Shown in pieces: positions 10,652-64,000 of a stretch of DNA of 64,000 nt. A program made the translations under genes and the position numbers. The DNA comes from Lama guanicoe. Its lineage: Eukaryota. Location of the stretch: contig MU056898.1 in the NCBI GenBank assembly GCA_013239625.1, forward strand, positions 1,765,717 to 1,829,716, given 5' to 3'. The first letter of the stretch is position 1. Each line of letters opens with the position of its first letter. The notes below the pieces were generated by a model that worked only from the letters and a program-made list of their open reading frames with translations, was not told the DNA's origin and searched no databases.

Positions 10652-11716
10652 CTAGACGGTGCTGCTGAACTTGACCTCTGACTGCTCGGTGCTGTCCGGG
10701 ACAACCGCCTTCAGGGCAGCGTGACAGACGCGGCTCAGCGCCGACACGCTGGTTTTCTGCTCGACGTACAGCCTCAGTTTGTCCCTGAAGGTCTCCCCGA
10801 GAAAGCCATAGATGAGGGGGTTCAGGCAGCTGTTGGAGAAGGCCGCCAGGTTGACGATGTGGCCAGTCAGCGGGTAGGCGTGGCGGAAGGACTGCTGGCA
10901 GGGGGCGGCCCCTGGCTGCGGGCGCTGCAGCAGGTGGACGCTGATGAAGACGTTCTCAGGCAGCCAGCAGATGAAGAAGACCAGGACCACGGCGAAGATC
11001 ATGCGGAGGGCCTTCTGCCTGCGAGGACGCAGGTCCCGGTGCCCCTGCGCCGAGACCAGCACCCGCGCGATGAGTGAGTAGCACAGCCCGATGACGGCGA
11101 AGGGGACGACAAAGCCCAGCGTGACCTCCAGCCACTGGACCTCCCTGACGTCCGCAAAGCAGAAGCAGGCCTCCTCTGTGTGCTGCAGCTGCACGGCGGT
11201 GAAGGGCACCAGCGTGGCAGACACGGAGGCCATCCAGATGAGGCCGCAGCTCAGCCGCGCGCGGGGCTTGGTGCGGAACAGGCTGCAGCGCATGGCCTTG
11301 GCCAGGGCCAGGTAGCGGTCGAAGCTCATCCAGGTGAGGAAGAAGACGCTGCTGTACATGTTGATCTGCAGGAAGAGCGACATGAAGGTGCAGAGCACGG
11401 TGAGGTCGTAGTACTGCTCGTCCAGGTTGAACACTTCGATGAGCGAGTCCGCCACCAGGATGAGGTCGGCCGCTGCCAGGTTGATGAAGTACAGGTCGGG
11501 GACGGTCATCCGCTCCCGGAAGCGGATGTTGACCACCAGGATCAGGATGTTCCCCACGAAGCCGATGGGGAAGAGGAAGACCGTGTAGAGGCAGGAGAGG
11601 AAGAGCCCGATGGCATACTGCTGCTGCTCCCAGAGCACGCCCGAGCCGTTGGCCAGCGCGCGGGGCAGGTCGAGGCCCGCGGGGCTGCCGTTGTAGGCGC
11701 CCAGCTGCGTCTCCAT
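10652..11716 (-). CDS. GPER1: G protein-coupled estrogen receptor 1 (GPR30), 354 aa, intronless CDS
   Basis: The translation matches GPER1 throughout: [48 protein letters not shown] and C-terminal PDZ ligand FSSTV. The track ORF starts at a GTG (11773). The first in-frame ATG is at 11716, in strong Kozak context (ggcATGg). Confidence 0.97.
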
Positions 11717-12016
11717 GCCGCGGGCGCGGGGCTCGCGCCTCGTCCCCTCGCGCGGGGCCCTAGGATTTGCCACAGGGCTCCCAGAAGCCCTTGTTCAGTG
11801 GTGAGTCCATCCTGAGGAGGAAAGGTGGGGCTCTTTGACGTGAGCTAGACACGTGAGGTCGCAGCTGCTCACAGGTGGCACTTGTGCAATTTGAGTTTGA
11901 TTTGCAGAAAGTTGAGCAAATGGAGGAGGTGACAGTGTCTGCGTGGGGGGGCACGTGTGTCCGCCTGGCCTCTGGGGCGTGGCTGCTATGTCCTCGGGGC
12001 TCCTAACGCTGGGCAC
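11717..12016 (-). other. GPER1: GPER1 5'UTR portion of the coding exon (acceptor at 12017/12018; possible alternative acceptor at 11812/11813)
   Basis: Minus strand reads tgccctctgctctcgctcccccAG|gtgccc. A second candidate reads cctttcctcctcAG|gatgg. Confidence 0.55.
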
Positions 12017-12630
12017 CTGGGGGAGCGAGAGCAGAGGGCACAGGCTACGTGTCACTAAGGCTTCCAGCGAGGCGGGGTAGCTGCAGGGCTACGAGGCAGT
12101 GCAGGGCGCGGGGAAGGCAGGACCTCGTCCGCTCTGCTCAGACAGGTGGCTGTTGCCCAGCCAAAGCAGGAGGATCAGAAAACACCCCCTTCTCCCCCCT
12201 GAGGGCTCCGGGCCGTTCGTCTAAGTGGAGGCCGATGTGACTCCTCATGCGCAGCGGGTGCAGGCTGGTGGAGGATGTGGACGTGGCGTGGAGGCCCTGG
12301 GAAACCTGTCGGGATTGGTCAGGAGAGGAGGTGAGCTGGTCTCGGCCACCGTTGGAAAGAGAAGGCGGATGGCGGGGGGAAGGCTGGCTTCTGCGAGAGT
12401 GCGCGAGTGCGCAAAATGAACGCTTTGTGGGAACGGGAGCAGAGCCTCTTCCTGACAATCAAATGGATCAGAAAGGGAGCTTTTTTGCTAATCCTAAGTT
12501 TGGGTGCTGAAAGTGAAACTTTTTTCATAATATGAAACGAAAAAGAGGACGTAAGGAATAAAAATAGTAATTACTTTAGAAAATAATATTAAAATTTTTT
12601 CCATGTTTTGACAAATTATTGTAAAATCAT

Positions 12631-12656
12631 TTCCTTTTCCTTTTCTTTTTCTTTTT

Positions 12657-12692
<36 letters not shown>
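12631..12692. repeat. Poly(T)/pyrimidine tract
   Basis: (TTTTC)n grading into more than 30 consecutive T. Confidence 0.95.
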
Positions 12693-12696
<4 letters not shown>

Positions 12697-14155: not shown

Positions 14156-14178
14156 GCCAGCCCCCGGTGGCGGCAGCC

Positions 14179-15135: not shown

Positions 15136-15352
15136 GAGCTGGGCCACCTGTGCCCCTCCTGGGCTGGGGGGAGCTGGGCTGGCCTGTGCCCCTCCTGGGG
15201 GATTGGGGGGAGCTGGGCTGGCCTGTGCCCCTCCTGGGTTAGGGGGAGCTGAGACACCAGTGCCCCTCCTGGGTGGGGGGGAGCTGGGCTGGCCTGTGCC
15301 CCTCCGGGGGAATTGGGGGGAGCAGGGCTGGCCTGTGCCCCTCCTGGGGGGA
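15136..15352. repeat. Minisatellite, 6 units of 35-39 bp
   Basis: Core gagctgggctggcctgtgcccctcctggg, with units starting at 15136, 15171, 15210, 15246, 15281 and 15320. Confidence 0.92.
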
Positions 15353-19914: not shown

Positions 19915-20904
19915 TTAACTCCCCACTCTATTCAGGGAGAAGTTGTTGCTGGCCTCTCTCCTCCGGCACCTTTGGGTGAGCCGCTCCGGGAGGCTCAGCA
20001 GGGCCTGCCTGCATGGCCGGTGGAGGAGGAGGGTGGCCAGGGCAATTGCACAGCTCTCCCCAAACAGGGCCAGCTCCGCCAGGTTCATGAGCAGCTCGTC
20101 CCGGGGGGCACCGATGTCCCTCCGCAGCTTCAGCCGGGCCCGCTGGACAAGCGCGGTGTTGTAGAGGAGGCGGCAGGCGAATGAGGCCAGGGTGATGGCC
20201 AGAACCACCCAGCAGTGAGCTGAGCCCGCGTCCCCCTGGGGCAGAGCCGCCCAGCCAGCCCGCTGGATGCCAAGCAGGGTGAGGAGCACAAGCTTCAGGA
20301 CGAGGGCCAGCCCGAGGCCCAGGCTGACCTTCACGATCTCGTACTCGGGCCAGGCGGTCAGTGGGTCCACCTGGCACAGAGTGGGTTCGTAAAGCTCCCC
20401 GGACGTGCCCAGGAGGGCCACCACTCCCAGGGAGCTGCAGATGGCACAGCCCCCAACGGCGGCCAGGCTGGCTGCGGGCCTCTGGGCCCCTTGGGGGGCC
20501 GCGCGCAGGCAGGACGGGCACTGCAGCAGGAACGCGGAGAGCATGGCCACCTGCACGTACTGCGCGTTGAAGTAGCAGATGTTGAACACGAGGGACAGAA
20601 CGGCACAGCCCAGGTGGGTCGTGGCCAGGTAGTCTGGCCGGCCAATCGCTGTGAGCGAGAGCAGTGTCACCAGCAGACCAGTGGCAGTGAGGTCCGCCAG
20701 GCAGGCATCCAGGCCCTGCAGCCTGGCGCGGCCTCGGACAAAGGTGGTCAAGTTGAAGAGCCCGGCCGCCAGGCTCAGCGGTAGGAACAGTGCCGTGTAG
20801 ACAAGCGTGCACCTGGACACGAGGCTCTGCGCGGCTATGACCTCTTCCACAGCCGTGGAGACGCGGCTTGGATACCGGATCCAGGACATGTTGTGGGTGC
20901 TCAT
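19915..20904 (-). CDS. Divergent orphan class A (rhodopsin-like) 7TM receptor, 329 aa, related to GPER1/GPR146
   Basis: Intact ATG-to-TAA ORF with seven hydrophobic segments that align by eye to the neighbouring GPER1 and GPR146. It has an N-terminal sequon (N5-M-S), Cys100 at the top of TM3 and Cys177 in ECL2. A splice acceptor (gctgcttctgttccAG|) lies 16 nt before the ATG, which has a purine at -3. Confidence 0.85.
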   Translation of the reverse strand: MSTHNMSWIRYPSRVSTAVEEVIAAQSLVSRCTLVYTALFLPLSLAAGLFNLTTFVRGRARLQGLDACLADLTATGLLVTLLSLTAIGRPDYLATTHLGCAVLSLVFNICYFNAQYVQVAMLSAFLLQCPSCLRAAPQGAQRPAASLAAVGGCAICSSLGVVALLGTSGELYEPTLCQVDPLTAWPEYEIVKVSLGLGLALVLKLVLLTLLGIQRAGWAALPQGDAGSAHCWVVLAITLASFACRLLYNTALVQRARLKLRRDIGAPRDELLMNLAELALFGESCAIALATLLLHRPCRQALLSLPERLTQRCRRREASNNFSLNRVGS

Positions 20905-23900
20905 CTCGGCCGGGTCCCACCTGGAACAGAAGCAGCGGGGGACGTGGGCCTAGCGTCAGGCTGCCCCCTGGGTTCGGGACAGTCTGGGACCTCGTTAAAG
21001 ATATTTCTGGGTCTTGCCCCCTTTCCCGCGGAGGGTGAGGGCATGGGGCGTGGTATTAACAGCCATCTTCCCTGCGGGGTGGATCCTGGGGAGACTCCTC
21101 ACCCCACCCCTCTAGCACCCCCTCCCCTCATTGCTGACAAACCGCTTTCCCCGTCCCGCCCCTAGAGCAGATGTGTGCCGGGCCCCTGTCTCCCAAACAG
21201 GGTTCCGTGGGGGGTGTCCAGGCAGGAGGGCTAGGGCTTCCGTTTTGAGCCCATTGTCCTGCTTTCCACACCCAGGCCCCTGCCCTCCAGGGGAGCGGCT
21301 AGTGCCCGCACTGCAGGTGTCACCAGCTCTGGCCCACTTGTGGGGACTCTGCTCAGAGCTGGAGTCCAGGAGCGAGGGCTCAGCCCTCCTGGCCTGGCCT
21401 TGCCACGGGAAAAACCTCGTTTCTGTGTACATGTCGCCCCCTCCTTAGATTTCAGCCAAACAGCAGGCGAGGCTGGCAGACCACACTGCTGTTTGTTCAA
21501 AGCCATTGCGAGCAGGAAAAACTGGGGACGGACCCAATGAAACGCTGAAAGGCGGGCGTGGCTCCCCCTGCTGGGGACGGGCCCCCAGCCTACGGCGGGT
21601 GTGCCAAGGCTCGTCCTCACTCTGCGCCAGGCCGGCTCCATTGCATGGTGACCACGGGCAGTGGGCGGGGGTCTGTGCAGACGTGGGTCCACCGTGGCTC
21701 CTCTGGCTGGCTGTCTCAGCACACGTGTGTGTGGCAGGCTCGTGTGCCACATGAACACTGACTAACCTGTGTCTGCCGCGACATGGCTGCTTGCTTGCTT
21801 TCCTGGAGAGCCGTGCCCGTGTGCACCCTGCTCTCGTCCCGCCAGCCTGTGGGGGTGGCGGGGCCCGTGTGCTGCAGGGGGTCATGACGTCTTCCACCTG
21901 CCAGGGCTCAGGGGTCAGTGACTCCCTGAGTGACGTCACACCTAGGACTGGTGGCCAGACCGAGAGGAAGTGACTTGGAGTGTTTCCTTGATGAAGGCAA
22001 ATTGGAAAGAAGATGCTGTGAACCACTGACCCTGGTGCAGGAAACAGCCTCAGGCTGGCCAGCATTTCAGGCCTTCTGGAGCAAACGCCCTTGTCCTTGC
22101 TGGTGGCATTTGGGGCATTCTTTATCAGGGGCCACCCAGTTGTGGGTGTGACCTAATGTGCTGGCGGGCCCCGCGTCCCATGTCGCCCAGCCAGGCGGAG
22201 GGAGGGCGCGAGTCCAAGCTGGGCCCGGAGTGCGTCCCGGACTCTGCCGACCGGAAGCCCTCGCCTGCTCCTCGCCGAGTTGAGTGCTTCTCTCCAGGCC
22301 AGGCCTGCCTTGGGGCGAAAGGGGCTCCAGCTTCACGGGGTCATCCTCCCCCACGGTGTGAGCTGTCCGGTGGGAGACCGTGGACTTGGGGGTCCTCAGA
22401 GGAGAGAGCAGACGGGCTCCCAGGAGTTGGGGCCATGGTGGACAAACTGTCTCCACGCGTGGGGTGTCCCCACGTGCACAGGTCGGAGCACCTTCTGTGT
22501 GAAGGTTTGCTCAGACCTTGGTTTTCCGCACGAAGCAGGTACACGTGTGAAACCACTTTCCAGCTGAGGTGAGAGTCATGGAGCGATGTCCAGGCCAGTG
22601 TCCAGACCTGCTCCTAGACCATGGGGGCCGTGGGCCTGGACATCCAGCCCCACAAGCCCCCCTGCACGCAGGGCACCCCAGAACCCCGGTGCCTGTCCTG
22701 GTGGTCCCTTTCCACCCCTGCGGACGTCCAGGGCGTGTGAGCCACCTGTTCTTGGCACCTGCTGTGATGCTGCCCTGGCAGAGGGCTGGCCCCTCACCTC
22801 TGAGCAGGACTTGCTGTGTGGACGGCCACTCCGTTTGAGTAACGTTGGGGTTTTGACTCTATGAATAAAGCTGCTTTTTAGAATTTGAATGTAGTTTTCA
22901 CTTGAGCACTTTCTTTTCTTGGGTGAGCACGCAGAGCAGGTCTGCCAGTTCTCAGGGTAAGTGTTTAACTTCACATGAAACTGCTTGCATTTTCCCGCAC
23001 GGCCGTCTGTCCTGCCTTCCAGCCGGGAGCTCTGATGCCTGCGCTGCTCCAGCAGAAACGGCGGTTCTTACCTGAGGCTCAGGGTTTCCTGGGAGGACAG
23101 GCCTCCATCTTGTTCTGGTGCCAGTTTCAGGCCAAGGACCAGGGCTTCTGGGGCCCTTCCTCAACTACACAAAAGGGCTGCCAAGGTCCAGCCTCCCAGG
23201 GGACTCCCAGGGCCAGAGCCTCGAGAACATTGTGTTCTCTGCTGCAGCTCCTTAAATAGTTTTCAGAGTGGCTCTAGGAAGCGGGTTCTGCCTCACCGGA
23301 GTTAGAAGGGCCGGTCCCCGTGGCCCCAGGGGTCCACAGTGGGTGTGGGTGGTCCTTGCAGCCCCTCCCAGCCCCGGCGTCCAGACCTGGCTGCGTCCCG
23401 CCGTCTCGTGGCCGCCCTCCCCTGCACTCGGTGCTCTCTGGTCAGACCTGTATTGTTGTGAGCGAGCTCCAGGTCCAGCGGGGCCACTCGCTCCATTTCG
23501 CATTTCCCCGCTTCCACACGGATGCGTCATTGCCATAATTACCGTAGTGCCACTGACACCCCCCGCCCGCCCCGCACCCTGCACGTTTAACAGCACGTGT
23601 ACACTGTCTTGATGGGGGTGCGGGCAGGCCATGCTGCCCTCCTGTGCCAGCCAGGGGACCGTGTCTGACAGCGGCGTCCTAGAGTGTGTGCTTCAGGTTG
23701 TGGTCTCGCCTGAGGGGCCCAGCCTTGGCCACTGTGGTCAGTGCCTCCCGGCAGGGCCGCCACATGTTCCCTGGCCCTCCCAGCACCACCTCGAGTCCCG
23801 TCTGGCTCTGCTGCTGGGAACTCCTCCGCCCTGCGGTCACCACTCGGGCCTCTCCCGAGCTGACGGGGCAGCCGACGGGAGGCCCCAGGCCTTAAATCAA

Positions 23901-33853: not shown

Positions 33854-34855
33854 CTACGCCATCGCCTGCTGCGGCCCCGCCTGGTCTAGGGCGCAGCCCT
33901 GCTGCCCACGGTGCACCTTCTTCAGCAGCCGCCGGAGCTTGCCGGGGAAGTTTCTGTTGATGTAGCGGTAAAGCAGCGGCACCACTGAGCTGCTGGCGAA
34001 GGCCAGGGACCGTGACAGGTCCTTGGCAAAGCGCAGCATCCGCAGGTGGTGCCCATCCAGGGGCTTGCCCCGCGCAGCCAGGATCGTGTGCCCCAGGAGG
34101 GTCAGGTAGTGAGGCGTCCAGAGCCCAAACTGCACACACACAGTGGCCACCAGGAGCCTGTGCACCGAGGGGTCCAGCCACCCCGCGTCCTGGTCAAGCG
34201 GCGTGTCCGCCTTCCGGACTCGTGAGAGGAGCACGAGTGCATAGAGCACGGCCAGGCCGGGCACCAGGTACCCGGTGAGCACCAGGATGGCGTCGGCGGC
34301 CTCGGTGTCCTGCATCCTGGCGCATTCCGCGAGCCTGGCTGCCACGTGGCCGCAGATGTAGAAGAGCAGGGAGGAGAAGCTGGTGAGCAGCGCCCCGCCC
34401 CAGACGAAGCCACACACGTGCCTGCTGTTGTAGACACTGGACATATAGGTGCGCGGCAGGGCCCGCTCAATGTAGCAGTCCAGGCTGAGCAGGGCAGTGG
34501 AGTACAGGGTCACCAGTGAGGACACATTGAACAGCACGAGCAGCGTGATGTGGACCGCGCTGCCCAGGTCCCACAGGGCCCACCCGGAGGCACCAGGGCC
34601 CAGCAGGTGCACGGGCGCCAGAGCGCTGAGGACCAGGCCCGCCACGGCCATGTTGGCGAAGTAGACATCAGGCATGGTCATGCTGCCCTGGTCCTGCAGG
34701 TTGACCGCGAGCAGCAGCGCGTTGTAGCCCAGGCCCACCGGGACACCGACCACCAGGTGGAGCAGGGACAGGGCGGACAGGGCCCGCTGGACGTGCGGGC
34801 ACAGGAGCTGGTCCTCACCCCCGCCCGTGCCGTTGAGAGGGCCGCAGCTCCACAT
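33854..34855 (-). CDS. GPR146: G protein-coupled receptor 146, 333 aa, intronless CDS
   Basis: The translation from [10 protein letters not shown] contains [42 protein letters not shown] and PLLYRY. An acceptor (ctctgcgctctccccacAG|cccgccATG) lies 6 nt upstream, so the first 63 aa of the track ORF are probably not coding. Confidence 0.96.
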
Positions 34856-43129: not shown

Positions 43130-43770
43130 AACCTCCTAGGCGGCCAGCAGATCTCAGCTGCCGCTGGACAGGTGAATGACCGCAGGGCAGCGGCCCCGGC
43201 TTCGCTGCGCTGGGCTCGGCGCGGCTGGAGGGCAGCCACGGATGGGGACAGCGCCCCCACCCTCAAGGGGACAGCGCCAGGGCGGGGCCGGGGGACCCGA
43301 GAGTCCGAGCGGAGCACTGGCCGCGCGGGGCCGCCGCGTCCCCGGGCTGCCCCCGTGCAGGCCGAGACCCTAATGTGGCCGACCGCCCCCGACCCCGCGT
43401 TCGGCGCCCACTCACCGGCTTGCTGGGCCGCTGGCCACGCAGTGGCCGCCGGGCGGGCAGCTACGGGCTCCGAGGAGGCGGCAGGACTCACGGCGCGCAC
43501 GCCGCGCGGGCCTGTGTACACACGTGACCGCGCCTGCCCGCTGGCCACGCCCTCCAGGCCACGCCCCCGGGAGCTCGCCGGGCTTGGCCACGCCCCGGTG
43601 AGCCCCGCCCCTGGGCCTGGGTTCCCGGCGCTCAGACCCAGTGGCCCGGCCGGGGTCGGGTGGCCAAACGCGCTCTAAGCTGCAGGGGACAGACGCCCCC
43701 TCCCTCCGAAGGTCGGAATGGGTCCTGCCGGGTGCACCTGCTCCTCTTCCGTGAAGCGTGCTCGGCGGCT
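43130..43770 (-). promoter_or_regulatory. CpG island; probable GPR146 promoter and non-coding exon 1
   Basis: Dense CpG. Minus-strand donor CCG|GTGAGT at 43416/43415. Upstream are GTCACGTG (43521-43528), three GGCCACGCCC KLF/SP motifs (43543, 43557, 43586) and a GC box near 43603. Confidence 0.7.
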
Positions 43771-44451
43771 CCAAACTCACCGTTTACTTCCTGGCTTTAG
43801 GAATTTCTTTGTAAACTGAACTGGCCGCAGGAAAACCATTTAAAGAGACAGTGCCTTGTTCGTAGTGGATTAATTCTGTACCTGCTTCTATAGTTAGGTG
43901 TTGGGGAAGCTGAGAGTGAGGTCACCGGCTCTCTGATCCCTGTGCTGGGGCAGGACTCCTGGCAGCACGTTCTGGCTCAGTTTCTCAGAACGTTTCTTTG
44001 TGAAATCCAAGTATGCAGGTTGTGGCATTCATCCAGATTTGCTGTGTGACCAGGGGCTGAAGGGAACAGCCGCCAAGACTGGCCCTGAGCGTTGTGGTCC
44101 TGCCGGCCAGGCCCAGGGCTCCACCTTGGGCCATCCTGCTTGACAGGACAGCTTCCTGACCATGGATCGAGAGGGAAGTCGGGGGTCAGCTGGGGGACCA
44201 CACTCCCTCTGGTTGAAGGGCAGGGCCAGATCTCACTCTCTGTCAAGGCCACTTGTAGACCCCTGGGGCCCCTACCTCCACCCTGTCGTCATGACAGTAA
44301 CTTGCTCCTCACCCCAGCACTGGACTTTTGTGACAGCGGGCATCCGACAGCGGGGCAGGACTGGCCACTGCCAGCCAGCGCCGATGCCCAGCTTAGCCTG
44401 TGCCGCTCCTGCTCTGGGCCCAGAGCAGCCTTTCGAGGGATATACTCCCGG

Positions 44452-51103: not shown

Positions 51104-51288
51104 NNNNNNNNNNNNNNNNNNNNNNNNNNNNNNNNNNNNNNNNNNNNNNNNNNNNNNNNNNNNNNNNNNNNNNNNNNNNNNNNNNNNNNNNNNNNNNNNN
51201 NNNNNNNNNNNNNNNNNNNNNNNNNNNNNNNNNNNNNNNNNNNNNNNNNNNNNNNNNNNNNNNNNNNNNNNNNNNNNNNNNNNNNNNN
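51104..51288. other. Assembly gap (185 N)
   Basis: Run of n characters. Confidence 1.
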
Positions 51289-53720: not shown

Positions 53721-53929
53721 GCCGGTTCAGCCCTGCTGCAGCTGGTGGGGATGTGGGGTGCGGACTGGGAGCAGCCGGGGGCCCTGCACCGCGTGGGTCT
53801 CCTGCCTCCCCTGTGGGGACCGCCAGCGCCCTGGTCCACTGCAGGCCTAGGTGTTGGTGGAGGCAGGGCCTGCCTGTCGCCAGGCCCTGGGAGAGGGCTC
53901 GTCTGCCACTTGGCGGCCGAGCTGTGGGC

Positions 53930-54790
53930 TGAGAAGAGGCTGCGAGCCTCCGTCCGGCCTTCACGTGGCGCGGCGAGCGTGGGCCCGCGCCCACCACGGT
54001 CCAGCTCTGCCCATCGCGGCGGACGGGGCGCCAGGCGCAGGGTCTCTCCGGCAGGGAGCCCCGCCCACACGCCGGAAGCCCCGCCCAAGCGCCGGGCCGG
54101 CGCGCTTGCGTCACCGTCCAGCCGGCTGGATCTGGTTCCAGCCGAGTCGGGCCGGCCTGACATGCGCAGTGCGCGGGGGCCGGGGCTGTGGCCGGGCGGG
54201 AGCCGCGGGCCCGGGCGCACCTGGCGGCCGGGGAGGCGGAGGTCAGTGCGTCGACCCCGGGAGCGGGGCCCGGTGGGGGCGTGGGGGGTCCGTTCTGCAC
54301 GCGCGGGGCGCGGGCGGGCTCCGGCGGCGCCCTGGAGCCCGAGACCCCGGGAAGAGGGCCCCGGGCCCAGCGTCCTCACCGAGGGGGGCTGGGCCGGCGG
54401 GGGGCTTGGGTTGCCACGCGCCGCCGACCTCGGGCGGCGGCTGCAGCCCTGCGACCCGGGCGGGCCCCCTGGGCTCTCCGGGCCGCGGCCTGCGCCGCTT
54501 CCCCGCCTCCTGCCGCCTCCCCCGGGCCCGGCTGCCAGCGCGCGGCCCGGGACCGACGCGGGGTCTCCCGGGGCCTTAGCCCTGCGGGGCCCGCCCCAGC
54601 CCCGCAGGGCGCAGTAGCGAACGCCCACGAGGGTGTGCGCTGGCCTGCTGGCGTAGGACCTGGCTGTGCTCGCTGCTCGGCGACGCGACTGCTCTCGGGG
54701 CGTTACGCGCGCTCAGGAGTCGCCGCGCAGGGAGAAGCCTGGCCCGGCAGCACGGTCCTAGCGCGAGGTTGCCTCCAACAGCGGACGACG
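53930..54790. promoter_or_regulatory. CpG island; probable internal or alternative promoter
   Basis: Extremely GC- and CpG-rich, with GC boxes and an NRF1-like catgcgcagtgcgc near 54161. Donor-like sites occur on both strands: GAG|GTCAGT on + at 54241 and CAG|GTGCGC on - at 54221. Confidence 0.7.
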
Positions 54791-57700
54791 GAGGCTGGGA
54801 GGTGCCTGGTACACGTTTGGTGAAGCTTTTGGGTTTCGCTGCTTCCTTCCTTGTCTTGGGGCAGTAACACGTTTTGTTTTGTTTTTCCCCCAAAGCTCGT
54901 ACTTCTGGCGGGCCCTGGAGCCTTGGACGCCGTGCCTGCTGGGCCGAGCGGCAGCGGGGCCCGGTTAGGACGGGCCCGGTCGTGCAGCTTCCTCTCCTGA
55001 GGAGGAGTTCAGACCAGGGGCTGCTAGGCTGTCGCGGGGCGAAAACGTCACTGACAGTCTTGTGCCAAATGGGGCGCTTTTTTTCGCTTTGGGGGAGCCA
55101 CGCCAGGGGTAGCTGCGGCGTAGCTGGAGGCCCACCTCGAAGGAGCAGGAGGGACGGCTTTGTGGTTTTCAAACAGTAAGGATCTGATTTTCATAAAGGG
55201 CAAGATCGGAACTGCCAAATTAGAACAACTGTTGGCTAATGTGGGGAAGCTGTTGAGAAGTGTGCTCTCTGTGTATTTAGTGCTGCTTCTAGACTCAATT
55301 CGGACACTGAATACTCCACTCAGCTCCGCCGTGCTGTCTGCCTCCTGCCGGGACGGCATGTTCAGGTTAAGAACAAAACGCAGCCTGAACCCGTCACGAG
55401 CCACAGGTTCCCGCAGATGAGAACAGATTCACAGTAGGAGGGAGATGGGCATGGCCGGGGCCCGGGGAGCACAGTGGCCTGCTGTGAACACAGGCCGGAC
55501 CGAGTGTGTGACCTTTGCCTTCTGGTAACTGGGACGTCCCACGTGAGGCTGTTGACTGCGCTGAGTGCAGCCGGCCGAGCTGGGTCGGCCTTCAGCAGTG
55601 AGAGAGATGGGGTGGGGGGTCATAAGTCCTCCCCGTGCCTAAAACCAAAGGGGGCCCGCTGGGTGGTCCTACGCGTTAGTATTGCAGCTCTTGTGGAGGA
55701 GGCCCAACTGGGGTCTCTTTGCTCCTTGGATATAGGCGGAATCAACCCGGAGGCTTAGCCAAGACCCTGGGAGGCAGTGAGGGCTGGCGAGGGGTGGGGA
55801 GAAGGGCAGGGCAGCCCTTGGTACCTGGGCTTGGGAAGACTGACCTTGGAGTCAGGAGACCCTCACCTGTGCCCTCTGCAGTTGGCAGGTGTGTGCGGTC
55901 CTGGGCCAGGGCCGTGTCTGTGCCTGGCGGGCGGGAGGCCTCCGGGCTGAGGCTCCAGGAGGCAGTGAGGGGGCCCGGCCAGCCTCCCCAGACTCTGCCT
56001 GTCGCGTGTCCAGAAACGGAAAGCCGACCTGATGCGAGTAGATCGCGTGGCACTCTGAACAGCTTCACTCCTGGTGGGAGTTTTCCTGGTGAAATGACTG
56101 TGTCTCCTCTGTCCTCCTGCCCCCCGCCTCTGTGTGCTGTGCACGTCAGGAGGACGACCCCCATTTCTCAGCAGCACGTGAACACATCTCCTGGTGTGCT
56201 TGGGGGCCGGGTCCGCAGCCTGCAGGGCCCCCCACCCACCACATCCCATCTCCACGTCTGGTCACGGCTCTCCGCCCATGGGCCTGCGTCAGCTCGGCCC
56301 CTGTCCTGCTCCACGTCCACCAGCTTAGGGGCGGGGCCTCGCTTGCAGCTCGCAGGGACCTGGTCCCTGACGCACCAGGTCCAGGCTGGCCCTGGACAGC
56401 TGTCCCATCCCACACGGCACTCTGGTTGGGGACTGCTGGGTGGACCAGATTCCGTGCATCCATGCCCTGGGCCTTCAGTGACTGCTGGGCCACCCATGCA
56501 CCTGCTGGGAGGGGGGTGTGCAATGGGCTGCTGGTGTCCGGCTGGTCCCGCGGGCTGAGGAGGTGGGGCAGGGGCGCATTTGCATTTCTGCCACGTCTGC
56601 GTCTGCGTCTGGTCTGTGTCTGCCATTTGGCTCTGCCTTTGGCCACAAATCCCCGGGGCCTCTGCCTTCACCCCCTTCCCTGTCAGACAGCAACCTGGGG
56701 GAGTTCCACCCCCCGAAGACCTAGTCTAGCTTTGCCTGTTCTGTCCGTCCAAGGGCGGGAGTGGACAGACGGCCTCAGAAGTAGAACGTGTGCTGAGTGG
56801 AACAGCAACCTGTGGTGTCTCAGGGCCGTTTCCAAAACCTCATCTGATCTTTGTAAAGAGGGTTTGTGTCCCAGGGCAGTGACGCCAGGGCCTGCTGTTC
56901 GCAGCCGAAGGGTCCAGCCCCTGGCCCTCATCTTGTATGTGTGGGGTTTGCAGAGAGGCTGTCCTTGCTGGCTGGGACCACCAGATGCGGAGGACTTGAG
57001 AAGTCGGTCACCCACAGCCTTGGGGAGGCCGTGGAGTCCCGACGCCGTCCCAGGGTGAAGCTTGGTGGGCCTTGAGAAGAGTTTTGTGGGGCTGGTCACC
57101 TCCCACCCGGCTTCGGCACCCAGATGCGGGAGTCATGTGTCCTCCAGCTTTTGTAGCGCTGTTGGCATGTAACAGGCTTTCAGTTCAACCCTTGGTCCTT
57201 GGGTCAGAAGAGAAGCAGGATAGAGTTGAGTCTCTGGTGTCTTCCTGAGATTCAGCTCTGGCTGCAGAAGGGGCTGGTACCCCAGCCTGCAAAGCGTGCA
57301 GCCTGCGCAAAGCCTTGTTCTGAGGCTGGTCTCTGGCAGAGGCCCGTGTCTCCAGCTCATACGGGCAGGTTCCACTGTCAGCCGAGCCCACAGCGTGTGA
57401 AAAGGTTGCTGTGGAAGATCCTGCCCAGAGCACTGAGCTGTTCGTAAGGGCCACTGTCCCAGCCGCCTTCGCCTGGTGCTGTTGGGGTAATGGGACCCCA
57501 CCCCTCAACAGCCTCACCTCCTCCCCTGTAACCTCGGGATTCCAGGTCTGATTCCTGTGCATTTGTGTGTGTGTTTCTGGGAAGAGGGTCCTGTGATTTC
57601 GTCATAGCATCCAAGGCCCAGACGGAATGAGGGCAGTAGGTTTGGGTGAGGAGAACCGTCGGCTGGAAGGGAACTTGCTTCCTGGGAAGAGGCGGCATTG

Positions 57701-58097
57701 GGGTGCGTCCCACCGGAGAGCCCAGCCTTTCCGGGGCTTGGGGGGCAGGGCTCTGGTTGGAGTTCTTGTGAGAGCATTCCATCTCCCAAACTCTGGGAGT
57801 TTGGACCTGAATGAGAAAAAATAACTCTTACCTGCACTGCCTTCAACTAAAATCGAGCATTTCCTTCTGCTGTGAATGTTGGCAGAAGATCAGAGCAGGC
57901 CTGGCAGGGCCATGGTGGGCACGTCAGGGGACACCTCGCCCTGTTGCCCAGATCTGCCACGGTGCATGAATGAAGCACGAGGGTTCCCCGTACATCCTGG
58001 TACCTGTCTCATCTGCGCCCATGTCTGTCCCCGGGTTCACACATTTGGAAACCTCAGGCCTGCTGCAGTGTCCGGATGGAGGAGCCGTGGTCCGCCC

Positions 58098-58178
58098 GGG
58101 GCTGCCGCTGTCCCTGTCCTCCAGGAGCTCACCTGTCTCTGGCCGTGAGCCCCTCGAGGCCAGAGCCTGCGTCTGCCT
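58098..58178 (+). ncRNA. MIR339: microRNA-339 precursor
   Basis: The 5p arm TCCCTGTCCTCCAGGAGCTCAC at 58111-58132 matches miR-339-5p. The 3p arm TGAGCCCCTCGAGGCCAGAGCC at 58146-58167 pairs with it. The position in the C7orf50 intron is as expected from synteny. Confidence 0.93.
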
Positions 58179-61100
58179 CAGCACCAGCGCCAGCGCCACG
58201 GCTCCAGAGGGACCCCGCCGCCCCACGCACGGCTCCCGTGACCCAAGTGTGGTTGATCAGGGCAGCTTCCTGCTTTGTCAGCGTGCACACTTTCTGAAAC
58301 TGTTTAGAATTGTTCTAGTTTTAACCAGGGTATTGCAAACCAAATGGAGAGGGGAAACATTACTCCTCCATGATCCTGAATTAGCAGAAGTAACTCAGCA
58401 TAACTCAGGTGTTGGGGGAATCGGCCTTAAAAGAACTTGACAGTTTGGACTTGCGTGCCTAGTTAAGTCTAACAAACCTGAGTGTTTAGGGTCTGGTTCT
58501 GCTGGGAGGTTGGGGTAGGTGCTCTGTGTTGCCTCCCAAGTTGCATCTGGTTGTTTCAGGATAAAAAGTTTCATTAAAATACTGTGGGAAACACTCCCTT
58601 TTTTGTTCTTCATTTTTTATTAAAGGAGAAAGTGGTTTGCTGCTACTAGGTCCCCTTTTGAATTTTAGTAATTGTGGTAGTGGGTCCAGTCAGGGTTGAG
58701 TTTTCACACTGGAGCAGCATCTCTGCAGGAGCTGCCTTCGAGCACAGGACTTCATGCTGCCAACACCCGGGTTCGGAACCAAAAGGAAGAGGGGGCTTCG
58801 TGTTCTGGGGCCAGCTTCCTTGTAGGGACACACGCTTCTGCTTCTCCACGCTGGACCCCGGTCTCCGGAGCCCTGTCTGCGCCCGAGCTCTGGTTGGCAG
58901 CCGGGCACCCAGACCCAGGGAGTGAGCCAGCACCAGTGACTCTGAAGGAGCAGCCAGCCCAGAAGACCGTGCCTGCAGACAGACCCATGGTTAAGGACCG
59001 CTCTGCTAGGGGTCCTCGAGGACACAACGGGGAGGAGTGGCACCTGGAGGCACCCTAGGCTCTGACCAGCTCTGGAGGGCACTGTGCCCTTTGGGACACC
59101 GTCTGACCTGTACGCAGTGAGGTGAGCAGCTGTGTCCCAGCCATGGCCTGGGGGTGGCAGTGCCCCTGCTTCCTCCCAGTCCTGATCTGCTCGTTCTGTA
59201 GGGTTGTTGGCTGGTGGATTTGTCTGGACAGATGGAGCGGGTTAGGGAGGTGGTGGGTGGGATGCTGGCCGACTGCTGCAAGACCGTCCCGGTCCCCACC
59301 TGACAGCAGCCAGCACGCTGCAGCCCCACCAGGTCCCACTCCACACGCCTCCGCGACCACTGCCTGCAGGCACTTGCTCAGTGGCAGGAGGTAAGCTGGA
59401 CCCCACGTGCCAAGTCTGATGCTGTTTAAACCATTTTTGGTGAAGTTTCGCTCTGTCATCTCAAACCAAAGGCTTCTGGGGACTCTGTCGGTGATGCATT
59501 CCTGGTCAGCCCTTCCTCCCAGCCTGTGCCCCCAGCTCCACCCAGCAGAGCAAGGCCCGCCTTCTTGGAGGGGGGGCCCTGTCATCAGAGGTGAAGGGGG
59601 ACTGTGTGGAGCACGGCGAGCTACCCGGGAGTGGCTCAGAAGCGCACCTGTTTCATGGCGGTTCTGCCTGTTTCCAGGGGAGTCCGGGCCATGTCTGCAG
59701 GGGAGGGGAGAACCCCCCAGGAGGGTGGGACAGGCTGAGAGCACAAGGCCCACCCTGCACTCGAGAGGTTCAGCAAGACCCGTCTGAACAGTCGGGGCTC
59801 CAGCTGGGGTGGGAGGTGGGGCGGAGCACCTTCCACGCACAGCCGGCGGCCTTGGTGAGAGCGTGGGGGCTTGTCTGTGCTGGGCCAGGACGCCGCTCAG
59901 AGGGCAGCATGGACGGGGCCCCGTGGAGGTGGCGCCGTGGTTCTGCCGTGTATGGATTCACTCTGGTGAGCTCGCCTTCTGGGGTGGACGGAGCACCAGA
60001 GCCCTGGCTCAGGGCCCTTTCAGCCTGGCTTCAGTGAAGAGAAGTGGTGGCTGAGGCTGGGCACCTCCGGACCACCAGCCACTCACCTGGCAGAAGCCAG
60101 GACTGCTAGCTGCGGTGGGGCTGTGGGGAGGAAGGAGGAGGGGTGGGACTGGGGGTGTCCAGCTTCTGTCACTGGCCTGCTGGGCCACCTGAGGCCTTCC
60201 CGCCACTTCCTTCGCCTTCCCACCTGTCACCAGGTAGAGACAGTGTCCATCACAGGCCACATCTGGGTGATGTGTCCCCTGCAAGGAGGCAGGCTGGACT
60301 CCAGCACGCACGGCCCGCCATCTCGGTGCTGAGTGCTGTCAGCGCCCAGCGTCCCAGGAGAGGCAGGGGTCCCTGCGCTGCAGACAGGCTGTGCTGCTCC
60401 GTGTCGCAGAGCCAGCCCCAGCCAGCCCCCAGCCCCATCTCCTCCTTGCACCTGTGCCTCTGGCCAGCCTGCAGAGCCCCTGGCAGGAGTGGGGACAGTC
60501 CTGGAGGTCAAGGGGGTCCCCCTTCCTCGTGCCCCCCAGCCTTTCCTGTCAGGAAATCGGGGGACCCTGTGGACTGTCCCAGCACCCTCTCCTCTGCAGC
60601 TGGTAGCGGGGCTGGTCATCTGCCAAGTCACTCCAGAAACCCCCGGGGCCGCTGCCCCTCTGCCCACTGGACCGGCATGGGGCATCGCGGGGCGCTGGTG
60701 GCTCCCTTTCCCTCCAGCTCTCTGTGCCGGGTTGGGGGGGTGCACTTTATCTTGGCTCTGGGAGCTCCGGGAAGACAATGGACCCTTTCTCTGGGACACA
60801 AGAGAGCCGCTGTTGACCCTCCCGGGGCCCGAGCTCAGGCTGGGTGATGGCTGGACGCCTGGGGTCTGGGGCGCTCGGAGCTCTGGGGCGTCTCGGCCGG
60901 GGCAGCTGACCCAGTGGGAGGTGTGAGGAACGAGGCGGTGCACAGACAGGGCCTCCTCTCATCCCAGCGCTGCCCTATGTATGTCCAAGGGTGGTGGTGG
61001 GCGGTTGAGACCCCTCCCCAGAATAAACGTGCGAGAAGTCCCTCGTTTGACAGAGAGCCCGAAGTGGACGGGCTGGCTCAGGACCAGACGGGAGTGCTGG

Positions 61101-63875
61101 GTGGGGTTTTGTCTGGATGGGTCACACCAGCTGGAGGACCTGAGTTTCCCAGGAGGCAGGGTGATGGGGGGTCCCCCGCTCCAGCACACTCTGTTGTGCC
61201 AAGTGGCCGCACGTCTGTGTCCAGTTCAGTCTGGGTGGGTGGTCCTCACGATGCCCTCAGGGCTGATCCTCAGCTGCTCCCATGTCACCCCCCATCTCCA
61301 GCCCCCCGCTGCAGGATGAGGACTCCTGGGCTGCCTGCCCCACCACAGACTGGGACAGAGGGCCCTCAGGACTACCCACCCCTAGATGCACACGGAGCAG
61401 GGGAAAACCTCACCCTGAAGGCCTGGCACCGTGGTTGAGCTGCCGGGGGCCCCAGAGAAGGGAAACTGGCACCACGATGACCACACAGACCTCGTGAGTC
61501 CTTCCTGGGTCTACACGGGCCCCTCCCCGCCCTCCGGGGTCAGCCCCCTTTCTTAGAGACTCCGATCCCTGGAGGGAAGGGGAGGAGTGGCTGGATTGGG
61601 GTGGGGCTGGGGGCCCTGCAGCCCAGCAGCCGGAGTGTTGGCAGCCTCCTGGGATCTCCTGGTGGCCCCAAAACCACAGTCTGGGAACCAAGACCCTAGT
61701 GTTAATCCCTGAGTGTTGGCGTCGGCCCCCAAAGGCGGTGTCCCCTGCAGGAACAGGCTGTGCCGCCAGCAGCGCTCGTACCCGCTGGCTGTTTCCACCA
61801 GTTCAGCGGGACGGGGCCTCAGAGGCCACTGACCAAATTGGGAATGATTTAAAGAAGACTTTTCTGTAGTTTTCAGATTCTGTGCCTAACCCGAGACTTA
61901 GGCCCTTAATGCTGGGCATTCTGGAAGCCGCAAGAGAAGTGGCTGGGCCCTTGGGGGATCCTCCCCGAGGGACCCGCCTGGCCCACGTCCTCCTCCACCT
62001 GGGCCCACGCTAGTTCAAGTTCCTGCTGCCAGCCCTGCAGCCCGGGCCGTGCCTCCTTCCTGTGTCCGTCCTTGGTGACTGCTGTACCTCACGGGCTTTC
62101 GCTGGGCCCACAGAGCACCCCAGGAGCCCTCAGGAGTGGGACAGGGCTCCCCTGTCTAGTGACCAGGGTCCTCTGGCCTTGGGGCAGCAGCCAGCACCCT
62201 GTAGGGTCAGAGTAGGGGGATGGCAGGGGCCAGGCCCTGGGTTTGAGGGCACTGCCATGCCCAGCGACACCTGGAGCCGTGGAGGGTGTGGCCACCACAC
62301 GGGCAGATGCTTTCCACCCTCCCTGTCCCTTCCCAGACCTGCCCAACCTACGGGCCTCCCTCCAGGATCAGCGTTGACAGACCCCCCAGGCCCACCCACC
62401 ACTGCCGCAGCCCTGACCCTTCACTGGGACTCGGCCTGGTGGCCTGTGTGATGCCCCCGATGTGGCTCAGAGGGCAGGGCCTGGCCTGCAGGGCTGGGGG
62501 GTTGCCTGCTTTTCTGGGAGCCAGCGGGTGTGTCTCCTAGACCCCAGCAGATCCCACTTAAGGTTGGATGGACCCAGAGGTCACTGTGCGAGTGAAGTAA
62601 GACTAGTGTCAGTTCACTCACGTGGAATCTACACCATGTACAAGGAGGCAAACAGGAAGACATGGAGACTGGGAGGGTGCGGGCTGGGGGCGTGCTGGGC
62701 CAGAGGGTGGACCCCACGGTGACAGAGGAGACCGCAGCTTTGGTGGCGGGCACGCTGGAGGGCACACAAGCGTGAAAACTCGCGTGACGTAAACCAGTGT
62801 CCCCCAGTAAAAAGAACGTTAAAACTCACCCCCGTCCGTGGGAGCCTGCGGCTGGCGGGGGTGTTCTAGGCGTGAGTGTAGGTGAGAGCACACCCACCCC
62901 CGACCACCCCTGTGGTCAGAGCTGCTGCTGCCCTGTCCTTCGGGCGCCCGGCTGTCCCCCAGCTCGCTGGCCCGGCTGCGGTGCAGTGCACGTGTGCACG
63001 CGAGGCATGTGCTCAGCGGGTCCCCGGCCCCCCCAAGGAGAGCCTGGGGCCCCGTCTGGAAGCATCTCCTGTGCGGGTGGTCTGAGTTACCCAGTGCGGC
63101 TCCGAAGCGCCACCGTGGGTGCATCCAGCTGGTTCTAAGGAGGGAGAGGGAGGGGCTGGGGAGAGCTGATCTATTGTTGTAGACGATTCCAGAAGGAGCG
63201 GGCGTTGAGGGGGAACACAGGTTGTGGGCGGTTGGCATTTGTTCAGGGCCTACTGGGGTGTGTGGGAAGGGCCCCTTGCCTTGCTCACTGGGGCGGGGGC
63301 TCTGAATGCTGGCGTGTGGTGGGGCAGCGGCCTGAGCCCTCCCTGGAAGCGCTGGGGCCATGGCCAGCCCCTGGGGCCAGCCTGAATCGCAGTGAACTCT
63401 CGGTGTCCCCGAGGCTCAGGGTGTGTGGATAGCTGCTGGAGTCCTTGGACTCCGCTCTTGTTTGGTTTGTTGGTCAGGGTGGGGGAGGGGCGTGCTTTCC
63501 AGGCAGAGGTGGCAGGAAGATTGCGTCACAGACCCCAGTCCCCCCACCCCGCCCCCAGGGCTCAGCCCAAGGAGAGACAGCTCCGCGCAGGCACCTCCTG
63601 CTTCCCCCAGAGCCGAGGGGCCCAGTGGGTATGGCTCCCCTGCACGTGCATGGTTTGCAGCAGGAGCCAGTGGGGGTGCCCGGGACACATGCCGGCCATC
63701 CCACAGGGCTTCCCCCAGGCACTGGGTCCCCGCGGATGCAGGGGTTTGAGGAGCCCCTTCCTCCTTCCCAGCAGAGTGTGTGGAGCTCTGCGCCGGGACG
63801 CACCGCCCGGAGAGCGTCTGAGCTCCGGGCAGCGGGGTCCAGGGACCCTGACCGCCGGTTCCCTTTGCCTTTCAG

Positions 63876-64000
63876 GGAGCAGCAGTGCTCGGGACCCTGT
63901 CCCCAGAGGAGCGGAGGGTCCTGGAGAGGAAGCTGAAGAAGGAACGGAAGAAGGAGGAGCGGAAGCGGCTGCGGGAGGCGGGCGTTGCCACGGCCCAGAG
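63876..64000 (+). CDS. CHLSN: Internal coding exon of cholesin / C7orf50 ortholog (truncated by window end)
   Basis: Acceptor ttccctttgcctttcAG| followed by [41 protein letters not shown], matching recalled human C7orf50 [29 protein letters not shown]. Absent from the ORF track. Confidence 0.92.

Follow-up and report, generated by a model that had tools for sequence, protein, structure and literature searches.

Does the cholesin gene, C7orf50/CHLSN, enclose its own receptor together with two related ones as a signalling cassette, and what is the receptor that lies between GPR146 and GPER1? These questions are raised by the guanaco locus analysed here, a stretch of 64,000 nucleotides which we call the window. 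A sequence-only reading had proposed such a cassette, in which the orphan receptor would be a second cholesin binder or a modulator of GPR146, and antisense nesting with MIR339 would couple or separate the expression of ligand and receptor. The cholesin-GPR146 pairing is said to go back to one primary report. We consider another account fairly probable, namely a conserved tandem array with GPER1-derived duplicates, one of which, the orphan, would be an atypical binding receptor, in the intron of a housekeeping gene.

The minus strand of the window contains three intact 7TM ORFs, which according to their translations lie head-to-tail as GPER1, the orphan and GPR146, with 8.2 kb between GPER1 and the orphan and 13.0 kb between the orphan and GPR146, Table 1. 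MIR339 and a CHLSN-like exon are on the plus strand, i.e. the trio does lie opposite the CHLSN strand and MIR339 in sense with it, as had been claimed. The mir-339 model (RF00763) scores 97 bits over model positions 1-92 of 92, with the gathering threshold at 60. The hairpin folds at -39.4 kcal/mol, with a z-score of only -0.81 in its G+C-rich context. Using tblastn with 10 family proteins, no further loci of these families were identified in the window beyond the three. If started at GTG, the GPER1-like ORF would cover 10652-11773 (373 aa) and the GPR146-like ORF 33854-35044 (396 aa). Both are mechanical extensions and were rejected; the ATG starts give the coding exons in Table 1, and residues 1-354 of Bos GPER1 align to positions 11716-10655 at 86% identity.

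Table 1. Position, strand and evidence for each feature of the window.
Feature	Positions	Strand	Evidence
GPER1 coding exon, 354 aa + stop	10652..11716	-	Pfam 7tm_1 E 1.4e-49; solved GPER1 665 bits; Bos GPER1 alignment
Orphan 7TM coding exon, 329 aa + stop	19915..20904	-	ORF; relatives; AF2 model with predicted class A fold
Orphan 5' side: leader of 16 nt + probable 3' splice site	20905..20940	-	sequence reading
GPR146 coding exon, 333 aa + stop	33854..34855	-	Pfam 7tm_1 E 7.3e-14; 99% identity to Camelus bactrianus GPR146
CpG island, G+C 0.67, CpG observed/expected 0.84	43001..43900		composition
Assembly gap, 185 N, non-coding, in the GPR146-MIR339 interval	51104..51288		N-run count
CpG island, G+C 0.74, CpG observed/expected 0.84	53801..55100		composition
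MIR339 precursor hairpin	58097..58188	+	Rfam RF00763
Partial K/E/R-rich coding exon, taken as internal CHLSN/C7orf50 exon	63876..64000	+	translation; acceptor upstream

The plus-strand exon starts after a pyrimidine tract and CAG (...ctttcag) and runs past the end of the window. It has no usable Atlas match and no relevant Pfam family; the K/E/R-rich stretch that it encodes is putatively C7orf50/CHLSN, and the exons coding for its WKF domain (formerly DUF2373) would lie beyond 64000. Two scans of the plus strand of the window found no N-terminal CHLSN exon. The claim that all these genes lie inside one CHLSN intron can therefore not be closed within the window, because the upstream CHLSN exon, and with it the 5' boundary of the intron, falls outside; the part that stands is the CHLSN-like exon at the window end. 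The nesting in one intron is taken from annotation outside the window: a table row for primates reads 'intron 2 (C7orf50)/intron 1 (GPR146)' (PMC5545731), and another table gives C7orf50 as the host gene of miR-339 (PMC3105101). The guanaco locus has the same arrangement as the primate C7orf50 with its nested GPR146, GPER1 and MIR339, but it contains an additional intact receptor between GPR146 and GPER1.

In ten species (Tupaia, Galeopterus, Thomomys, Dipodomys ordii, Sorex fumeus, Monodelphis, Sciurus, Ictidomys, Gekko kuhli and Paroedura) the orphan and GPER1 are on scaffolds of identical length, in three cases together with GPR146; scaffold sharing is judged by this length match only. Two public gene models are chimeric, with GPR146 fused to the orphan in Myotis and the orphan fused to GPER1 in Cricetulus, which suggests that order and strand are maintained in bat and hamster. 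The window may well represent a conserved tandem array in its camelid version, in the order GPR146, orphan, GPER1, whose transcription runs opposite to that of a long CHLSN/C7orf50 intron, the host of MIR339 as well.

Judged by sequence, the orphan is an orthologue of mouse C130050O18Rik and rat LOC102546864, and the gene is thus already known. The identity to the rodent proteins is 62-63% over 100% of the window ORF, they belong to the same length class and there is no structural difference; the camelid gene is another orthologue. The identity to Camelus ferus LOC102511494 is 95%. C130050O18Rik has been described as GPCR-like, CSF1R-dependent, expressed in microglia and macrophages and missing from primates, with orthologues in 'most vertebrate species' (PMC7941205), and it is present on a RAW264.7 macrophage array (PMC3716731). 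The papers found to mention these identifiers give no function for them.

A protein search identified 46 relatives of the orphan at E<=1e-3, 45 full-length and one partial chimeric model, from placentals, marsupials and platypus. A profile search (58 matches) adds turtles, tuatara, lizards, geckos and crocodilians, with 39-43% identity and E-values of 1e-101 to 1e-117. Neither the 46 nor the 58 matches include a primate protein, and no bird, amphibian or fish orphan was found; the search was filtered and needs shared 5-residue words. In a FastTree phylogeny of 85 sequences, which holds only the three families (39 orphans, 21 GPR146, 25 GPER1) and is unrooted without outgroup, each family forms one clade with support of 1.0, 0.987 and 1.0, and within the orphan clade reptiles, mammals and marsupials each form one clade. 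The orphan evolves at about four times the rate of GPER1: its camelid-alligator distance is 1.65 substitutions per site versus 0.40 for GPER1 between camelid and gavial, and the camelid-opossum distances are 1.23 and 0.28, in family alignments that differ in the taxa sampled. From these sequence data, the orphan appears to have been vertically inherited since the amniote ancestor at least. Its 16-nt leader (20905-20920) is preceded by AG at 20921-20922 and a pyrimidine tract. This AG is probably a 3' splice site, and one or more 5' UTR exons should therefore be located further upstream.

The three receptors had been called related, and a local duplication had been proposed from a likeness of GPER1 and GPR146 in TM1-TM2. 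This likeness is present in the translations, and an alignment of the whole proteins covers 293 aa with 25% identity (E 2e-16). We compared the family profiles with the sequences of PDB chains, a ranking that covers only receptors with solved structures. The best match of the GPR146 family is GPER1 with 86.3 bits, followed by CCR6 with 53.9 (a margin of 32), and the best match of the orphan family is also GPER1, with 52.7 bits (E 2.9e-13), followed by CXCR1 with 31.5 (a margin of 21). The hhalign probabilities are 99.4 (E 1.5e-21) for GPR146-GPER1 and 95.5 (E 1.6e-8) for orphan-GPER1, and by BLASTP the Hipposideros orphan matches the window GPER1 with 24.9% identity over 277 aa (E 4e-6). Between the orphan and GPR146 similarity is barely detectable by hhalign (probability 3.4, E 0.013) and not significant by BLASTP. 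Kinship is thus found for GPR146-GPER1 and orphan-GPER1, and the orphan-GPR146 pair falls out of the claim. The local duplication is supported, and on firmer ground than the TM1-TM2 likeness, as GPER1 is the best solved relative of both. The sequences support an ancient origin of GPR146 and the orphan by local duplication from a GPER1-like class A ancestor, which would have been chemokine-receptor-like, followed by strong divergence; we infer the order of the duplications.

The AF2 model of the orphan, built with 39 sequences, has a pLDDT of 77.9, a pTM of 0.78 and seven long helices plus H8. Foldseek finds at least 500 matches at E<=1e-3, and all of those listed are GPCRs, including ACKR3; GPR30 is ranked second and has the lowest rmsd (3.9, TMt 0.80). 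With VIA-align, class A receptors obtain Z-scores of 24-25 at an rmsd of about 3 over ~260-270 aligned residues. According to the model, the orphan has a class A fold. None of the 39 orphan members matches Pfam 7tm_1 (PF00001) even at E<=1, and the window orphan matches no Pfam family at E<=0.1.

The orphan is on the same strand as the adjoining GPER1 and shares its fold and the TM3-ECL2 cysteines (C100 and C177 in 39/39, the Cys3.25 pair), but the identity is only ~15%, and N1.50, D2.50, DRY, W4.50, W6.48/P6.50 and NPxxY, which show little or no variation across 25 GPER1 sequences, are absent. DRY is found in 25/25 GPER1; in the 39 orphans the 3.49-3.51 columns (four commonest residues shown) are A11/T10/L8/V4, F25/V4/T3/S3 and L34/F3. 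TM6 reads C37-R37-L39-F32 of 39, with R for W6.48 and F or L for P6.50. In TM7, position 7.49 is N17/S15, P7.50 is replaced by S/L/N/A and Y7.53 by I/T/V, and there is a conserved 'ESC' block. An N-terminal glycosylation sequon is retained. GPR146, the neighbour on the other side, is also on the same strand, is likewise a diverged relative of GPER1 and likewise lacks R3.50 and D2.50: in 21 sequences D-[Y/C]-Y replaces DRY, 2.50 is G and N7.49 is missing. Unlike the orphan it keeps W6.48, P6.50, P7.50 and Y7.53, matches 7tm_1, is found in primates by protein search, and evolves slowly (64% identity between camelid and axolotl).

The conservation pattern of the orphan is inverted compared with GPER1. 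Using inside and outside as assigned from the AF2 model, which is of moderate confidence, 37 invariant columns are in the extracellular half and two in the intracellular half, with none in ICL2, ICL3 or H8. Columns conserved to at least 90% make up 62/165 of the outer and 17/163 of the inner half (odds ratio 5.2, p 7e-9), whereas the controls are inverted (0.62 for GPR146, 0.78 for GPER1). This also applies to the TM helices only (37/102 outer versus 15/100 inner, odds ratio 3.2, p 7e-4; controls 0.57 and 0.63). The conserved outer regions are the N-terminus, ECL1, upper TM3, ECL2 and upper TM7; on this outer face five acidic positions (D180, E187, E189, E270, E277) are invariant. The cytoplasmic face is poorly conserved. 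The ranking of GPER1 as nearest solved relative, the missing 7tm_1 match, the loss of DRY, CWxP and NPxxY, and the outer-half conservation are new here.

This pattern would suit a receptor with a conserved ligand or partner on the extracellular side but without canonical G-protein activation, i.e. a decoy or scavenger, an arrestin-only receptor, or an accessory subunit. By analogy it resembles the atypical chemokine receptors (ACKRs) and other DRY-less class A receptors, a class with a shared chemokine-receptor-like fold, an altered or absent DRY and presumed binding without G-protein activation. In ACKRs most of the other microswitches are intact and 7tm_1 is matched, whereas the orphan shows neither. 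Going by the rodent literature, the orphan would act in cells of the macrophage lineage, presumably in camelids too.

Motif loss alone is no proof that the orphan is dead for signalling, since GPR146, without R3.50 and D2.50, is reported to signal through PKA/ERK. The orphan could likewise couple to G proteins through non-canonical residues; its modelled 7TM bundle is complete and includes helix 8, the C6.47-R-L residues and the 'ESC' block are conserved, but more has been lost than in GPR146, where the inner half is conserved, and only 2/39 invariant positions are found in the inner half. We regard a still signalling orphan as rather unlikely. It is most improbable that GPR146 and the orphan are independent chemokine-like class A members which are neighbours of GPER1 by coincidence. 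GPER1 is indeed closer to CX3CR1, CXCR1 and CCR1 (~120 bits) than to GPR146 (~66 bits) or the orphan, structure comparison does not separate it from other class A receptors (orphan-GPER1 Z 25.2, rmsd 3.0 over 261 residues, tied with many at Z 24-25), and, the tree being without outgroups, kinship is read from score margins against solved chains only. However, both divergent families independently choose the neighbouring GPER1 among all solved chains, order and strand seem, from the chimeric models, to be maintained in bat and hamster, and the apparently shared scaffolds extend as far as geckos.

For the cholesin cassette we found no support, and we hold it to be very unlikely. GPR146 and the orphan are physically nested opposite CHLSN, the conserved acidic outer face could suit the basic, K/R-rich CHLSN product, and GPR146 has been reported in macrophages (PMC13493280), where co-expression with the orphan would be possible in non-primates. 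Against it, the cholesin-GPR146 axis has been described in humans too, yet no primate orphan was found among the 46 and 58 matches; the reported expression of the orphan is in the macrophage/microglia lineage, its similarity to GPR146 is not detectable, and IUPHAR grades the pairing as preliminary (PMC13494238). C7orf50 is described as a nucleolar WKF RNA-binding protein, likely the orthologue of yeast Rbp95 (PMC9508819; PMC13178565), and because it is ancient, host and nested genes are not of joint origin. Seed sites of miR-339-5p (7-mer) are not enriched in the 3' flanks of the three receptors, with one in 6 kb versus ~2.2 expected (23 per 64 kb). Three cholesin papers make no mention of an intron, locus or nested arrangement. 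The idea that the orphan also binds cholesin or modulates GPR146 is left without positive evidence, and the nesting would be that of a tandem array of receptor genes housed in a large intron of a housekeeping gene of ancient origin.

The assembly gap is the sole N run in the window; the GPR146 CDS is 16.2 kb away, a CpG island 2.5 kb and MIR339 6.8 kb. Distances spanning it are uncertain; no feature relies on continuity or frame across it. An ORF spanning the gap (50837-51466) is mechanical and was rejected; its flanks match no Pfam family at E<=10 and contain no tandem repeats. The CpG island closer to GPR146 is a candidate for the upstream promoter or 5' exon region of that gene, and the other gives rise to the numerous spurious ORFs that overlap one another at 53.5-54.8 kb.

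The minus strand of the window carries three long intact ORFs amid many spurious, G+C-driven ones in the ORF listing. The gene layout described by the sequence-only reading is therefore real: three 7TM ORFs lie on the minus strand, with MIR339 on the plus strand. The gene order itself is ordinary and already known from annotation. It is the middle gene, an unnamed 7TM gene between GPER1 and GPR146 (hereafter the orphan; mouse C130050O18Rik, rat LOC102546864), that deserves attention.

Features located in the window. In the columns: the feature, the position, the strand and the evidence or remark.
Feature	Position	Strand	Evidence or remark
GPER1	10652-11716 from ATG (354 aa); 10652-11773 from GTG	-	Pfam 7tm_1 E 1.4e-49
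Orphan	19915-20904 (329 aa)	-	ORF between GPER1 and GPR146
GPR146	33854-34855 from ATG (333 aa); 33854-35044 from GTG	-	Pfam 7tm_1 E 7.3e-14
CpG island	43001-43900		G+C 0.67, CpG observed/expected 0.84
Assembly gap	51104-51288		only N run; low-G+C non-coding DNA, far from every feature
CpG island	53801-55100		G+C 0.74, CpG observed/expected 0.84
mir-339 (MIR339)	58097-58188	+	Rfam 97 bits vs gathering score 60
Partial coding exon	63876 to window end	+	preceded by pyrimidine tract and CAG; runs off end

Solved GPER1 chains match the GPER1 ORF with 665 bits, and this ORF aligns end to end with Bos GPER1 (86%); Camelus bactrianus GPR146 is 99% identical to the GPR146 ORF. No extra receptor copies or pseudogenes were found beyond the three loci by tblastn of ten family proteins against the window. 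For the MIR339 hairpin the folding energy is -39.4 kcal/mol (z -0.81) and 41 of 200 shuffles are equally or more stable, i.e. energy alone is insufficient to flag it in this G+C-rich setting; the covariance model did. Among the 120 matches listed of 347, GPER1 is 354 aa long in the camelid, Bos, Physeter and Hippopotamus entries and 375 aa in most other mammals, which points to a probably shorter N-terminus in artiodactyls. A 330-aa ORF at 19928-20920, in another frame of the same strand, overlaps the orphan ORF. It is rich in proline, glycine and arginine, as alternative frames of G+C-rich coding sequence typically are, and is taken as a likely artefact.

The receptors and MIR339 had also been placed in a single intron of CHLSN (C7orf50, the cholesin gene). 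The exon at 63876 encodes a K/E/R-rich product, which we take to be C7orf50/CHLSN; as a single exon piece it gave no usable Atlas match, and Pfam returned only an irrelevant zf-HC2 (E 0.31). The plus strand was scanned twice for segments rich in K/E or K/R; this recovered the window-end exon and unrelated short stretches, but no N-terminal CHLSN exon in the window, and the intron can therefore not be closed within it. The placement does agree with outside annotation: an excerpt of PMC5545731 has a table row reading "intron 2 (C7orf50)/intron 1 (GPR146)", and C7orf50 is given as the host gene of miR-339 in an excerpt of PMC3105101.

A protein search with the orphan returned 46 relatives at E<=1e-3, all but one full-length, headed by Camelus ferus (95%). 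Orthologues are present in horse, rhino, seals, dog, bats, moles, shrews, colugo, tree shrew and many rodents, and further in lagomorphs, afrotherians, marsupials and platypus. A profile built from 28 mammalian sequences extended the range to turtles, tuatara, lizards, geckos and crocodilians, with identities of 39-43% and E-values of 1e-101 to 1e-117. The resulting alignment of 39 sequences has 39 invariant columns, and such conservation rules out a pseudogene or a chance ORF. The orphan is a real and old gene, already annotated and unstudied, of a 7TM family conserved in amniotes for more than 300 million years. Some public models carry N-terminal extensions that vary by lineage, one being common to a muroid set; since all models keep the same internal start, we place the start at the ATG at 20904. 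A probable splice acceptor lies just upstream of it, at 20921-20922.

According to an excerpt of PMC7941205, rat LOC102546864 is a predicted 334-aa GPCR-like membrane protein within a CSF1R-dependent microglial transcript set, and expression of the mouse orthologue extends over microglia and the majority of tissue macrophages. The same excerpt reports 1:1 orthologues in most vertebrates, primates excepted. In agreement with this exception, primates are found neither among the 46 proteins of the protein search nor among the 58 of the profile search. Primate GPER1 and GPR146 are both among the 120 matches listed of 347, and in Carlito the two lie on one 237,610-base contig. Among the matches listed, the orphan was not found in non-camelid artiodactyls (cattle, pig, hippo, whales), feliform carnivores, birds, amphibians or fish, groups that nonetheless have GPER1 and/or GPR146 there; these gaps may reflect repeated loss or only the limits of the search.

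Public annotation of the orphan is often wrong or chimeric (P0046, P0035, P0008, P0014, P0039). Two rodent entries are named "RIKEN cDNA C130050O18 gene". A Myotis "probable GPR146" model is GPR146 fused to a piece of the orphan, a Cricetulus "G-protein coupled estrogen receptor" model is the orphan fused to the GPER1 C-terminus, and plain orphans are labelled "GPER1 isoform X2" in Hipposideros, "GPR146" in Sciurus and "CXCR1-like" in Petaurus. An Atlas cluster named "OPSD protein (Fragment)" (55 members, Chordata, score 0.98) may consist of unrecognised orthologues. Main-text literature under the C130050O18Rik and LOC identifiers is sparse and assigns no function; supplementary tables may hold more expression data.

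The sequence-only reading derived GPER1 and GPR146 from a local duplication on the strength of a TM1-TM2 motif, and the support now extends well beyond that motif. The two proteins share 25% identity over 293 aa in BLASTP (E 2e-16) and align in hhalign with a probability of 99.4 (E 1.5e-21). When the GPR146 profile is run against all PDB chain sequences, GPER1 reaches 86.3 bits and the next family 53.9. The orphan profile also ranks GPER1 highest, at 52.7 bits (E 2.9e-13) against 31.5 for CXCR1, and a mammal-only version gives 37.2 bits against 26.9. The orphan aligns with GPER1 in hhalign (probability 95.5, E 1.6e-8), and one bat orphan matches the window GPER1 in plain BLASTP (E 4e-6). The orphan and GPR146 thus independently pick the adjoining GPER1 as their nearest solved relative, as would be expected of ancient tandem duplicates that then diverged fast. 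We found nothing relevant on GPR146-GPER paralogy in the literature.

The description of three related receptors is supported for GPER1 with GPR146 and for GPER1 with the orphan. It does not hold throughout, as the orphan and GPR146 show no significant similarity to each other and GPER1 matches chemokine receptors better (about 120 bits) than it does either neighbour. In a third protein search, only GPER1 and GPR146 appear among the 120 matches listed of 347. Structural ranking is uninformative on kinship, because VIA-align gives GPR30 a Z of 25.2, level with many class A receptors. In a FastTree phylogeny of 85 sequences, which holds only the three families with no outgroup and cannot test a three-receptor clade, the orphans of reptiles, mammals and marsupials form one clade each, consistent with vertical descent. 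For the same species splits, the orphan shows 1.65 substitutions per site against 0.40 in GPER1, and 1.23 against 0.28, i.e. it evolves about four times faster. In ten species, two geckos among them, the orphan and GPER1 are found on scaffolds of identical length; in Tupaia, Galeopterus and Thomomys this extends to all three genes. Together with the Myotis and Cricetulus chimeric models, this is indirect evidence that the array is kept in other species.

The AF2 model of the orphan, built from the 39-sequence alignment, has seven helices and helix 8 (pLDDT 77.9, pTM 0.78). Among the Foldseek matches listed for it all are GPCRs, with GPR30 second and at the lowest rmsd. Pfam recognises none of this: the window protein matches no family at E<=0.1, and 7tm_1 matches none of the 39 members even at E<=1. 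To compare the motifs, 39 orphan, 21 GPR146 and 25 GPER1 sequences were merged into one alignment. The TM3 and ECL2 cysteines are present in 39/39 orphans. Position 1.50 is G or S and 2.50 is N, S, G or H, DRY is replaced by hydrophobic-F-L, W4.50 is lost, CWxP has become C-R-L-F, and both P7.50 and Y7.53 are gone. GPR146 has lost fewer landmarks (D2.50, C3.25, R3.50, N7.49) and, unlike the orphan, retains W6.48, P6.50, P7.50 and Y7.53. In the GPR146 family alignment (A4, n=21), 2.50 is G in 21/21 and the disulfide cysteine at 3.25 is H in 18/21, while in all or most members DRY reads D-[Y/C]-Y, CWxP reads LWTP and NPxxY reads [T/M/V]PLLY. Despite these losses GPR146 is highly conserved, with 64% identity between camelid and axolotl.

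The most telling result on the orphan is the conservation of its outer half. The AF2 helices were used to label positions as inside or outside; by these labels the extracellular half holds 37 of the 39 invariant positions and the intracellular half two. Positions conserved at >=90% number 62/165 outside against 17/163 inside (odds ratio 5.2, p 7e-9), and 37/102 against 15/100 when only TM helices are counted (odds ratio 3.2, p 7e-4). When the labels are transferred to GPR146 and GPER1 the tendency is reversed, with odds ratios of 0.62 and 0.78 overall and 0.57 and 0.63 in the TM helices. The invariant residues of the orphan are mostly in the N-terminus (including an N-x-S/T sequon), ECL1, upper TM3, ECL2 and upper TM7; ICL1, ICL2, ICL3 and helix 8 with the tail contain none.

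Because of the motif loss and the conservation asymmetry, we infer that the orphan probably binds outside the cell and has no canonical coupling inside. Its selected function would be recognition at the outer face, of a ligand or of a partner protein's ectodomain, without canonical G-protein activation. The orphan would thus be an atypical receptor, decoy, scavenger or accessory subunit, acting by the rodent reports in macrophage-lineage cells. A non-canonical signalling receptor is an unlikely but serious rival, since GPR146 has lost R3.50 and signalling is still reported for it; loss of this residue alone does not abolish reported signalling. The orphan has lost W6.48, P6.50, P7.50 and Y7.53 as well.

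The sequence-only reading went further and proposed a cholesin cassette, with the orphan as a second cholesin binder or GPR146 modulator. Beyond the position of the orphan and GPR146 with CHLSN, all that we found in its favour is that macrophage GPR146 is also reported (excerpt of PMC13493280) and that five acidic residues among the invariant outer residues of the orphan could suit a basic ligand. Against it, the host C7orf50 is described as nucleolar in two papers: PMC9508819 has it as an RNA-binding protein with a WKF domain that is probably orthologous to yeast Rbp95, and PMC13178565 as a regulator of ribosome biogenesis. The latter paper contains no occurrence of cholesin, GPR146 or "secreted". 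Such a host is far older than its intronic receptors, and the nesting of GPR146 in it is therefore not evidence of a ligand-receptor module. In an excerpt of IUPHAR's 2026 review (PMC13494238), cholesin-GPR146 is among the preliminary pairings needing independent study, and no primate orphan protein was found. The 2-kb 3' flanks of the receptors hold 0, 0 and 1 miR-339-5p seed 7-mers, i.e. one in 6 kb against about 2.2 expected from 23 per 64 kb, and with no enrichment we reject targeting of the nested receptors by MIR339. The orphan-cholesin link is thus unsupported and a cassette very improbable, and the result counsels caution over the cholesin story. The fullest form of the decoy or accessory reading is a long shot too. 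In it, a GPER1-born, ligand-binding and transducer-silent 7TM protein would serve its neighbours' signalling in macrophage-lineage cells of non-primate amniotes, either by trapping a ligand, such as basic cholesin, or as a partner of GPR146 or GPER1.

What is new here is a pedigree for the orphan, as a duplicate of GPER1, and the testable prediction that it binds without canonical coupling. The Pfam class A model does not see the gene and primates lack it, which to our knowledge has kept it out of human-centred receptor lists. It adjoins two receptors of disputed pharmacology, and if the decoy or accessory reading is true, rodent GPR146/cholesin or GPER1 pharmacology includes a component absent in humans. 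As rodent microglia and tissue macrophages express it, mouse and human differ here concretely in a cell type that is in wide use for modelling disease.

No conclusion rests on continuity or frame across the assembly gap; the ORF spanning it was rejected as mechanical, and its flanks gave no Pfam families at E<=10 and no tandem repeats. No CpG island is found near the orphan in the window, which would fit a tissue-restricted promoter. Read on the minus strand, both CpG islands precede the GPR146 coding exon, and the one at 53801-55100 accounts for the many overlapping spurious ORFs that crowd 53.5-54.8 kb. A G-rich minisatellite at 15136-15350, between GPER1 and the orphan (period about 37-39, also 75 or 110; about 5.8 copies, 81% matches), likewise explains the repetitive proline/glycine-rich spurious ORF at 14815-15525. 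Directly upstream of the GPER1 coding exon, again in the minus-strand sense, lies a T-rich low-complexity run at 12630-12692.
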